NCBI GenBank assembly: GCA_965112735.1
Contig: OZ218960.1
Span: 2,046,001-2,110,000, forward strand
DNA: 64,000 bases
Direction: 5' to 3'
Source of the DNA: Phaeosaccion multiseriatum
Taxonomy: Eukaryota > Protista > Ochrophyta, other classes
This document shows, one piece after another, positions 50,002 to 53,362 of this stretch. The notes under the pieces are model-generated. The model had not been told where the DNA came from. It made no database searches and saw only the letters and a program-made list of their open reading frames with translations. The translations under genes and the position numbers were made by a program. Position 1 is the first letter of the stretch. Each line of letters begins with the position of its first letter.

Positions 50002-53000
50002 ATGGTTCTCTTTCGTCTCTGCGTCGTCTTGTTGCTGGTACTTGTGTCGCGCGTGGCGGGTGCATTCGGCCCCTCGTCCAAAGTCAAGGATGTGGACGAC
50101 AAGAGTTTCTCAAAGAGTGTGCTCAAGAACGAGGGTGAGAAAGTCGTCAATGTTTCTTCCTCTCTTCTCTCTCTTGAAAAGGCTTGTCGGCAACTTGCTT
50201 GTGCTTGTCCGGAACCTTCTGCTTGGCATTGAAGACCTTTGCGAAGCGAATCAGGTGACCTCACAGCTCCCCCTCCGTTGCTCTCCACCACCTTCACTTT
50301 CTGGCTGTGGCCTTTGCTGCTAACGTGGGCGTGACCGGTGCTGCTGCCCAGGGTAAGTGGCCTCCTCTTCTGCTTCTTTGTCTTGTTCTTCCTCGCTGAG
50401 CTTGCTGTAGTTTCTTTCCAAATCCTTCTCCCTGTAGCGCTCTTGCCCCTGCGTCTTCAATGTCGGTCCACGCTGACTTGCTCTTTCGCTTCCCTTGTCC
50501 TCCCCCCCCACCCTGCCGCTCGTCAAGTATTGTGATTGTGGAGTTCTACGCTCCGGTAAGATAAGAGCGCCTCACAGTGGAGGCTTTGGGGGGGGGGGGG
50601 GAGCAGCATGCGGAAGCCACGATTCCCAACTATGGCCCCTTATCGTAACCTTGTTGAAAGTAGCTCATTGGGCCCCTTCCTCTTGTGTGTGTCTGTCTCC
50701 CTCACCCACGTCGCGGATATCTCGTACCTGGCCTCCGATCAATACCTACAACTGACAGTGGTGTGGTAAGTTCTCAAAAGCGCCGATGGTGGCTGCCGCG
50801 GATCCTCTGTCCTTTGAGCCTCCCTCCCTAAATGCCTTCTTTCCTCTGCGCCTGTTCAGGCCATTGCAAGAGCCTGGCTCCTGAGATGGAAAAGGCTGCC
50901 GCTCTGCTTCAGGGGGTCGTTACTGTTGCCGCCGTGGACGCAACGCAATCGGAGGCTCTGGCCCAAAAGTATCAAATCCAGGGCTTCCCCACCATCAAGG
51001 TGTGCTGGCCGTTCGTTGTCTCGGCGTGTCTTGGGAGTGTCTTGGAGTGAGCGTAAGTCGTGATGAGCTTGAGAGAGGAGTAGTATCACTGAGTGCTCCG
51101 TGTCGTGGCGTGCTTTGCGCAATGACTGCAGGTATTCGGGGCGGACAAGAAGGCCCCTGTGGACTACCAGGGGCAGCGGACGGCCGATGCCATTGTCACC
51201 GAGGGGATGAAAGCCGTACGGAGGCTGGTGTCCGACAGGCAGAGCGGGAAGGCCAAGAAAGAGAAGGGGTAAGGGGTAGGAACCCACTGGAGGCAGTCTC
51301 GGCGGTGCTCTCCATTGGCGAAGCCTGTTCGTTCTGACCGTGTCCAATCTCCCTCTCTCGTGTCCCCCTCCCTCCCCTTACTCAGAAGTAGTGGTAGCAG
51401 GCGCCCAAGCCCGGCTCCTCGCGGTGGGGGCAAGAAGCGCGACGTGGTGACTGTAACGGCGGACAACTTTGACACAGAGGTGCTCGGCTCTGACGAGGCG
51501 GTGTTTGTCGAGTTCTACGCTCCGGTAAGATAACAAGAGCGCCTCTCAGTGGAGGCTTGCATACGGGAAGCACAACTCCCCAACTCCCCAACAGTCGCCC
51601 CTACTTAGAAGCTCGTTGAAAGTTTCTCATTCGACCCCATGTTACTGTGTGTGTGTCCGTCCTATCCCTCCCACGTCGCGGGTGTCTTGTGCCTGCCCTC
51701 CGACCAATGCCTGCAACTGACTCAGTGGTGTGGTAAGTGGTCAATGGTGCCGATGGTGACTGCGGCTGATTCTCCATGCTTAATGTATCCTTATAATCCG
51801 TTGCTATCAGCTTCCCTAAAAGCTCTCTTTGCTCTTCGCTTGTTCAGGCCACTGCAAAAGTCTTGAGCCCGAGTGGGCTCAGGCAGCTACCGAGCTCAAG
51901 GTGAGAAAAGGACAGCCATCCTGGCCATCGTGTGCCCGCAATGACGAAAGCAAAAGCATGAGAATGTGATCTCTCACGTTTCCCCTCCAACCTCTGCTCT
52001 GTTGTCAGGACTCCGGGGTGAAGCTTTGCGCTGTAGATGCTACTCAACACGAGAACTTGGCTCGGCGCTACGGCGTGTCTGGCTACCCCACCATCAAGGT
52101 GTTCCCACCAGGCCCCAAGAGTGCAGAGCCCACCCCTTACAACGGACCAAGAGTAAGTTCTTTGCTCTGCACTGGGGCTGTGTGAGGCTGACATCCGCCT
52201 CAAGTCGTGTGCTGGCTGACCCCGCTGCGCCCCCTTTCTCCTCTCCGCATCGCACAGGACTCAAGTGGAATCGTGGCCTTTGCCCTGAATCTCATGGAGA
52301 CGAGTGACTGGGAGCCCGGCGTACCGGAGCTCACAGAGACGCAGCAGCTATCCCAAAAGTGCCAGGGTAACAAGATTTGCGTCATCGCCGCCCTGCCACA
52401 CATTCTCGACAGCGGCAAGGAGGGGCGAGAGGACTATATTGCCACCCTGGTGTCAGCAGCCAAGAAGGTAGGTTTCTTGTGAGGGCAAGGGTCAAGATCT
52501 AGGGGAACCGCCGCTATATCCGGTCTCTAGTCTAAGTCTCGACCGACCGTTCCGCGCCCTCTCCGGACGCAGGCCAAGGCCGCCCACTTTCTGCTCATGT
52601 GGACGGAGGGAGGCGTGCAGGGCGAGTTCGAGGAGGCCATGGGGCTCACGTTTGGATACCCCGCGGTGGTGGCCTACTCCAAGGAGAAGGGGGCCCGGGC
52701 GGTGCACGTGGGCAGCTTCAACACAGAGGCCGTCGGGAACTTCCTCAAGGGGTAAGGGAGTAAGGGTGCTTTCCGTCCTGTGCTGCCTCCTGCCTCCTCA
52801 TCCAATTGTGCTCGTGACTTACCCGACTTTCTTTGCCTGTATCCACCATCCACCCCCGTGCCAGGCTCATGACCGGGAGCACCAAGACCATTCCCTTGGC
52901 GACCGTGCCCAGGATTCTCTCAGTCACACCCTGGGACGGAGAGGCGCCTGTCCTGGAGGAGGAGGAGGAGCCGTTCTCTCTAGAGGACTTTTTGAACGAA

Positions 53001-53009
53001 GATCTTTAG
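50002..53009 (+). CDS. PDIA6: Protein disulfide isomerase A6 (P5/ERp5) with a 1-nt exon (50352) and two 7-nt exons (50759-50765, 51726-51732)
   Basis: Signal peptide; two Trx domains EFYAP|WCG|HCK, GFPTIKVF and YPTIKVFP; b domain ICVIAALPHILDSG; acidic tail ending NEDL. Confidence 0.93.
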
Positions 53010-53362
53010 GCCCTCCCGCTTCTGCGCTTCTGCCTTAGGGGAGGGGTTGAGCTCGAACCTTCGTTTGGCTCCTGACAAGGTTCTGAGGCGACCCAGCCCA
53101 GAACCTGGAACCTGGCCCGCTGGCGAGGCTTGGCAGAACAGCCTTGGCCCTCATCACTGCCTTATTACATGGCTTTCCCCCAGAACCTGGAACCTTGGTC
53201 GCCTCAGAACCTTGTCATGGGCCGAATCAGGCCGGTTGCGCCGGCCGTAATCAGTGATCGGCCGTCAGAAGCAGAAGAACAAAAAAAAGAAAAAAAAAAA
53301 AAAATTGAAATTGAAACTGGCTCCTTCCCACGCCCTTCATCTTCATCTGTTTTCGTCTCGCC

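Follow-up and report, generated by a model that had tools for sequence, protein, structure and literature searches.

The P5/PDIA6-type gene and its two predicted 7-nucleotide exons

We analysed 64,000 nucleotides (nt) of the genome of Phaeosaccion multiseriatum (contig OZ218960.1 of assembly GCA_965112735.1, positions 2,046,001 to 2,110,000 of the forward strand). This whole stretch is referred to below as the window, its positions are counted from its first letter, and its GC content is about 58%. At 50002-53009 on the + strand it carries a gene of 13 predicted exons whose product, judged from its sequence, is a P5/PDIA6-type protein disulfide isomerase (PDI) with the domain order a-a'-b. Both catalytic WCGHC motifs of this protein are split in the same way, each by two introns that enclose a predicted exon of 7 nt, and the introns around the first motif are homologous to those around the second. 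The features of the gene are as follows.

50002-50134, + strand: exon 1; start codon, hydrophobic N-terminus and start of thioredoxin (Trx) domain a; aligns with the N-termini of orthologues
50134/50135, + strand: donor of exon 1, G/GTGAGA, phase 1
50352, + strand: exon 2, a single G, candidate 1-nt exon
50528-50555, + strand: exon 3; T ATT GTG ATT GTG GAG TTC TAC GCT CCG, encoding ..IVIVEFYAP
50556-50758, + strand: intron A1; 203 nt, GTAAGA..ACAG, phase 0, directly upstream of Trp; paralogue of B1
50759-50765, + strand: exon 4, predicted microexon A; TGGTGTG, the Trp and Cys codons and the first Gly base of the first WCGHC
50766-50859, + strand: intron A2; 94 nt, GTAAGT..TCAG, phase 1, splitting the Gly codon; paralogue of B2
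50860-50999, + strand: exon 5; GC CAT TGC AAG.., encoding HCKSLAPEM...GFPTIK; Pfam Thioredoxin, E 8e-12
51132-51268, + strand: exon 6
51386-51524, + strand: exon 7; linker and start of Trx domain a', ..AVFVEFYAP
51525-51725, + strand: intron B1; 201 nt, copy of A1 (identity 71%, or 80% if gap columns are ignored)
51726-51732, + strand: exon 8, predicted microexon B; TGGTGTG, second WCGHC
51733-51847, + strand: intron B2; 115 nt, copy of A2 (identity 65%, or 80% if gap columns are ignored)
51848-51900, + strand: exon 9; GC CAC TGC AAA.., encoding HCKSLEPEWAQAATELK
52009-52152, + strand: exon 10; exons 10 to 13 hold the rest of a', the PDIA6-type b domain and the C-terminus
52258-52467, + strand: exon 11
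52573-52751, + strand: exon 12
52865-53009, + strand: exon 13; C-terminus ..NEDL, stop codon TAG at 53007-53009

Both active sites read TTC TAC GCT CCG, intron, TGG TGT G, intron, GC CAY TGC AAR, and at both sites TGGTGTG is canonically flanked, with AG before it and GTAAGT after it. The positions that the initial annotation, made from the sequence without database searches, had given for the two microexons and their four introns were right to the base. Because the flanks are canonical, the frame is restored and the protein needs both WCG triplets, the two microexons are most likely constitutive, their use being read from frame and conservation. By analogy with plant microexons (PMC8831610), splicing would take out the introns on either side sequentially, since an exon of 7 nt is too short to hold both splice complexes at once.

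The joined 13-exon model with both microexons encodes 440 amino acids and contains two WCGHC motifs (frame checked by script). Exon translations were searched singly, and the exons were joined by script for two purposes, verification of the reading frame and location of the stops that follow skipping. Three exon translations matched Pfam Thioredoxin (E 8e-12, 1.4e-3 and 7.5e-7), and one exon of 70 amino acids gave 19.6 bits to PF24541, the PDIA6 C-terminal domain, for which the whole-protein cut-off is 27 bits. Over their whole length the exons align with orthologues that bear PF24541 and are named PDIA6 by JGI. The best protein matches, at 53-59% identity, came from Fibrocapsa, Ectocarpus, Pylaiella, Undaria, Chrysoparadoxa and Tribonema. 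As for possible features of a protein of the endoplasmic reticulum (ER), the N-terminus is hydrophobic and the C-terminus is NEDL, compared with -EL in the orthologues.

Upstream of the first active site, exon 1 ends in phase 1 and the exon at 50528-50555 begins with one leading base (acceptor ..CAAG/T, 50527/50528), so that joining them directly leaves the frame one base short. With ..CCCAG before it and GTAAGT after it, the single G at 50352 would supply the missing base of a Gly codon (G+G+T), and Gly occupies that column in four of the five aligned orthologues (Ala in Tribonema). We therefore regard this G as a candidate 1-nt exon that would restore the frame.

The two intron-microexon cassettes are homologous

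The initial annotation had described the introns as mutually homologous, and this was borne out. Global alignment gave 152 matches out of 215 for A1/B1 (71%, z=16) and 75 out of 115 for A2/B2 (65%, z=10), both measured against 300 dinucleotide shuffles, and the motif blocks that it quoted are visible in the alignments. Once the splice consensus had been stripped, the local z values were 47 and 12.9, respectively. There are exactly two copies of the 14-mer AGTGGTGTGGTAAG in the window, against 0.16 expected by chance with one mismatch allowed. BLASTN returned the cassettes as one colinear alignment of 367 columns (50541-50875 versus 51510-51863, E=1e-43). Comparison of the whole window with itself yielded no other match at E<1e-6, the cassette pair being the only internal repeat in the 64 kb, and among the ten introns of the gene that were tested, on either strand, there was no further similar pair (next best z 2.6).

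Divergence was the same in both intron pairs. Ungapped identity was 80.4% for A1/B1 and 79.8% for A2/B2, corresponding to Jukes-Cantor distances (K) of 0.23 and 0.24, and identity reached 76% in the intron interiors versus 82% within 40 nt of the splice sites (P 0.23). Equal K in the two pairs together with interiors at 76% therefore fits one event followed by uniform decay. Indels were rarer less than 40 nt from splice sites (P 0.005), which is what ordinary spacing constraints would give. When A1 was evolved in silico with uniform substitutions and indels until it reached the identity seen between the copies, and was then realigned, about 20% of trials gave a variance between windows as extreme as the real one and 70-90% gave longest match runs as extreme, so that the patchiness of A1/B1 is reproduced by simulated neutral decay. 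The patchiness of A2/B2 was marginal against the same kind of simulation (P 0.01-0.03) because of one large indel.

The PDI gene was recovered from four runs of one sample, all of them represented by genomic DNA contigs with no splice joints. Throughout the gene these contigs are colinear with the assembly, and the cassette pair is therefore not an assembly artefact. The one place where their length varies is the G14 run at 50581-50594 in A1, at which contigs of these same-sample runs differ by one or two additional G, reflecting either a homopolymer sequencing or assembly problem or real length variation.

We also considered whether A1 is related to A2. The two share short words (AAGAGCGCC/AAAAGCGCC and CTCACAGTGG/CTGACAGTGG), yet their overall similarity does not exceed that of shuffles, and we attribute the shared words to chance. 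Several introns of the gene have CTGAC, ATGAC or CTTAC, which resemble branch points, only 4-7 nt before the 3' AG. Such proximity to the AG is unusual and would crowd a 7-nt exon further. These motifs lie at the following positions.

50750-50758, + strand: close branch-point-like motif
51715-51725, + strand: close branch-point-like motif
51120-51131, + strand: close branch-point-like motif
51377-51385, + strand: close branch-point-like motif

The similarity stops at the edges of the cassettes

The Trx domains a and a' share 50% amino-acid identity and 35% third-position identity over 97 aligned codons, from which it follows that silent sites between them are saturated. Within the shared tract, in contrast, all eight codons of EFYAP and WCG are identical in nucleotides, whereas outside it only 15 of the 41 codons for identical residues (37%) are the same. 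The edges of the tract can be seen on both sides. Upstream, the final 15 nt of exon 3 are identical to 51510-51524, and downstream, silent differences return right after the second intron, at His, Lys, Ser, Leu and Pro, with similarity fading about 16 nt into exon 5 (at 50875). The tract measures about 335 bp. Beyond the two active-site introns no intron position is common to the two domains, the other positions being different (after PTIK in a, after ATELK in a').

Outside the cassettes, the exons of a and of a' are closer to the matching domain of five ochrophyte orthologues (Ectocarpus, Pylaiella, Tribonema minus, Chrysoparadoxa australica and Fibrocapsa japonica) than to the other domain; with Saprolegnia, the a exon gave a tie between the domains. 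This exon orthology and the saturated silent sites indicate that the domain duplication predates these ochrophyte classes, in agreement with the ancient duplication assumed in the initial annotation, and they rule out a young duplication of the whole domain as the source of the similar introns.

The a' active site is free of introns in four orthologues

For comparison we used class-level relatives with 55-59% protein identity, four of which, from three other ochrophyte classes, had genomic loci. Their active sites are arranged as follows, intron positions being counted from the start of the Trp codon.

Ectocarpus (L002, 2511-2721): a-domain intron at +7, TGGTGCG/GTGAGT...CAG/GACAC, in the Gly codon, with the place and phase of A2; a' contiguous
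Pylaiella (L006, about 2200-2357): a-domain intron at +7, as in Ectocarpus; a' contiguous
Tribonema minus (L003, 1159-2384): a-domain intron at +3, after the Trp codon; a' contiguous
Chrysoparadoxa australica (L001, 3222-3305): a-domain intron at +2, inside the Trp codon; a' contiguous

In domain a' of all four, TGGTGYGGNCAYTGC is unbroken, and B1 and B2 are therefore derived in the Phaeosaccion lineage. Since all four also have an active-site intron in domain a, that domain appears to be the older intron-bearing site, and copying is likely to have proceeded from a to a'. The position of A2 in the Gly codon is common to Ectocarpus and Pylaiella, and no intron at the A1 position was found in the four relatives. 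The active-site introns of Ectocarpus, Tribonema and Chrysoparadoxa showed no similarity to A1, A2, B1 or B2 (z at most 1.2), and so give no hint of a deeply conserved intronic element.

Every ochrophyte examined has active-site introns in domain a, at four places within 7 nt: 0 and +7 in the gene studied here, +2 in Chrysoparadoxa, +3 in Tribonema and +7 in Ectocarpus and Pylaiella, while the a' site, identical in sequence, has none in these relatives. Introns may have slid, or been gained repeatedly at a single site, to give such a cluster.

A brown-algal gene model from eukprot (P0233) joins ..SDGVWL directly to GFPSIK and omits the active-site region of domain a, which illustrates how annotation can fail around an active-site intron. 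In metagenomes, a scan with a 34-mer from the exon at 50860-50999 produced no match. A protein-guided scan found two distant loci, one with a contiguous WCGHC (L007) and one at 24% GC (L008). Two metagenomic PDIA6 loci (L004, L005) were intronless and uninformative.

Origin of the cassette pair

We consider it fairly probable (about 0.62) that a single ectopic conversion within the gene, an intron transfer, copied about 335 bp from a to a' and was followed by neutral decay. Domain a would first have carried two active-site introns 7 nt apart, the first preceding the Trp codon and the second interrupting the Gly codon. A single event at the DNA level, either ectopic intragenic gene conversion or repair of a break in a' with a as the template, may then have copied this stretch into the homologous place in a', about 970 bp downstream, primed by the nearly identical exon sequence for EFYAP, WCG and HCK. 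The copied stretch would have run from about the GAG of EFYAP through the first intron, the 7-nt exon and the second intron to about 16 nt of the next exon, so that a' gained two introns and a microexon. Thereafter the copies would have diverged neutrally to about 80% identity with many indels, keeping their splice signals (GTAAGA and GTAAGT donors, CTGAC and CTAAA branch-like motifs and pyrimidine tracts). The initial annotation had proposed a recent gene conversion of the cassette. Conversion agrees with the equal K of the two intron pairs, with silent identity limited to the tract and with the intron-free a' of orthologues, but the word recent holds only with a reservation, given substitutions at about 20% of positions and many indels.

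Several points weigh against this explanation. That the microexons are used, and with them the introns, is deduced solely from frame and conservation. The event is not directly datable or polarisable from class-level relatives, and the protein databases searched yielded nothing above 60% identity (a search with the 70-amino-acid exon and two word-index searches, whose queries were the Chrysoparadoxa protein and an alignment seeded with the exons of this gene). Mapping onto those relatives agreed with the transfer for a' (no active-site intron in four of four) and for the A2 position, shared with Ectocarpus and Pylaiella, and left the A1 position unmatched. The exon homology available for priming is short (15, 7 and about 12 nt). 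Indels are rarer near splice sites and the first 35 nt or so of A1/B1 are almost invariant, so that some extra constraint is possible. Finally, copies were searched for in one 64-kb window, and both sites may have received the cassette from a third copy outside it, such as one in a further PDI gene. Copying by the same mechanism from such a third gene with a PDI or thioredoxin domain, or from a' to a, would agree with the finding that only the +7 (A2) position is common to an orthologue and that the A1 position has no counterpart in the four relatives. However, the a' active site is uninterrupted in every one of the four relatives, each of which does have an intron within or adjoining the WCG codons of domain a. 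This makes a the older intron-bearing site, and we regard a different donor as unlikely.

The initial annotation had also suggested a conserved cis-module or intronic RNA that controls inclusion of the nucleophilic Cys, and pointed to a GCCTC..GAGGC hairpin. In this reading the introns would remain similar through selection, as a cis-acting splicing module or an intronic RNA (for example that hairpin, GCCTC-N6-GAGGC, 13 nt into the first intron) needed for, or regulating, inclusion of the 7-nt exon, so that splicing would control the supply of the nucleophilic Cys. After GTAAGAT in the first intron, 23 of 24 aligned positions are indeed identical, the hairpin stem is intact in both A1 and B1, indels are depleted within 40 nt of splice sites, and plant microexons rely on stronger intronic signals (PMC8831610). 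Selection on islands after an ancient duplication would nevertheless have left the remainder randomised, yet identity is about 80% along the full alignable length and still 76% in the interiors, with no significant difference in substitutions between regions near splice sites and the middle (P 0.23). The energy of the hairpin is ordinary (z -1.1 in both copies), folds of the hairpin and of the microexon surroundings were no better than those of shuffles, and two sequences provide no compensatory changes and give a consensus fold no statistical power. Rfam gave no match at E<0.5 within the cassettes; at E up to 1 its sole match was at chance level and outside them, with no snoRNA or other RNA family. 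A 14-nt complementarity that spans microexon A is not retained in B, and the orthologue introns are unlike those of the cassettes. Moreover, selection alone cannot make non-homologous introns alignable, so that a copying event would be needed anyway. Taken together, these results make the selected module improbable as the source of the similarity, although extra constraint on the first 35 nt or so of the first intron is possible.

A stronger version of this proposal, raised in the initial annotation as a microexon-based control system, is that PDI output is tuned by skipping of the 7-nt exons and the upstream 1-nt exon coupled to nonsense-mediated decay (NMD), in a species whose spliceosome handles exons of 1-7 nt routinely. 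If true, both catalytic cysteines of an ER oxidoreductase would depend on inclusion of a 7-nt exon. Skipping of either microexon leads to a premature stop (51208 or 52019), so that an on/off switch through NMD is formally possible. As skipping of A or B shifts the frame into a stop, the only possible output would be loss of the message, not a cysteine-less isoform, and no support for such control emerged; we hold this version to be very improbable.

Reverse splicing could also have placed the introns, if the excised A1 and A2 RNAs had entered the identical exon context of a' (CCG/TGG and GTG/GCC, in the same or another transcript) before reverse transcription and recombination into the gene. 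At each of the two insertion points, a and a' have the same exon sequence around the junction, and positions and phases are exactly homologous, as such a route would have it. It would, on the other hand, require two separate events in one molecule with the correct pairing, and it predicts no homogenisation of flanking silent sites, whereas eight of eight in-tract codons are identical against 37% outside. A single colinear tract of equal divergence is more simply explained by copying at the DNA level, and we think reverse splicing quite improbable. The same identity of target sequences in a and a' would suit introner-like mobile elements, two families of which would each have inserted at the same two targets in both domains. 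No further copy exists in the 64-kb window, however, and the cassettes lack terminal inverted repeats and target-site duplications. A1 and A2 are unrelated to each other, and four insertions with identical pairing and equal age would be unparsimonious. Summed contig depth over the cassettes was also close to single-copy, compared with 100-300x for a true dispersed repeat at 53070-53230. Such insertion is thus very unlikely, and the related idea of a common dispersed repeat inserted independently at the two sites, which the initial annotation had allowed for, is disfavoured by the same depth and by the copy number within the window.

The repeat at 53070-53230 is short, lies just 3' of the PDI stop codon and is single-copy within the window. 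In the contigs it has 100-300x the depth of its flanks, with many variant joints and loose ends.

Comparison with known systems

Introners, or introner-like elements, are present in Micromonas, Aureococcus and fungi as many copies in unrelated genes, and algal introners have transposon ends and target-site duplications. The Phaeosaccion introns resemble them in being mutually alignable at different places, which implies recent intron gain. They differ in that exactly two copies were seen in the 64-kb window, and these sit at corresponding codons of the same gene and lack ends of that kind. The ochrophyte P5/PDIA6 orthologues share with our gene the a-a'-b order, 55-59% identity and, where genomic sequence was available (four species), interruption of domain a at its WCG codons or beside them, but they have one intron there (+7, +7, +3 and +2), no microexon and an intron-free a' active site. 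Our literature searches returned nothing relevant on microexons in stramenopiles or brown algae, or on introns in PDI active sites.

Few-nucleotide exons are established in plants, where constitutive microexons measure 15 nt or less (PMC8831610) and Arabidopsis has a single-nucleotide exon (PMC4674806). Their flanking introns are removed sequentially, often the downstream one first, with the aid of strong intronic signals (PMC8831610). Like these, the predicted PDI microexons are coding exons of a few nt in a conserved domain, with strong canonical splice sites, and are easily missed by annotation. Whereas the plant microexons are supported by RNA and conserved across land plants, those of this stramenopile PDI are known here from genomic sequence, and, unlike them, the PDI microexon occurs twice in one gene, as paralogous copies, on the catalytic WCG.

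A close parallel is intron transfer by recombination or gene conversion between paralogues, for which a 2012 review listed only three indirect cases (PMC3443670). Such transfer has been proposed for Chironomus globin genes, and indirect cases are known in Mycosphaerella and Aspergillus (PMC3443670). As in these, the introns of one paralogous sequence are found at the homologous, formerly intron-free position of the other, and they are alignable in spite of old coding sequences (here 80% ungapped identity against 35% third-position identity). In our gene, moreover, the phases are the same, the recipient a' site is intron-free in outgroups, at class level, and the similarity forms one continuous tract with co-converted exon flanks. 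The present case departs from those reviewed (PMC3443670) in that donor and recipient would be domains of one gene about 1 kb apart, that two introns and a 7-nt exon would have moved as one tract, and that the flanking exon homology is very short. Intron gain has been argued largely from indirect cases, and transfer between paralogues by recombination is among its least documented routes. With the exons saturated, the introns 80% alike and the outgroups without the recipient introns, the sequence itself shows the event almost directly. The cassette would be one of the few clean instances in which introns have spread through copying of DNA, and it would show that duplication can carry a microexon along with its introns. 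It would also add a case in which the catalytic WCG of a PDI lies on a 7-nt exon missed by automatic annotation. The kind of event is thus known but poorly documented, and the cassette adds a variant of it that is relevant both to intron evolution and to the annotation of short exons.

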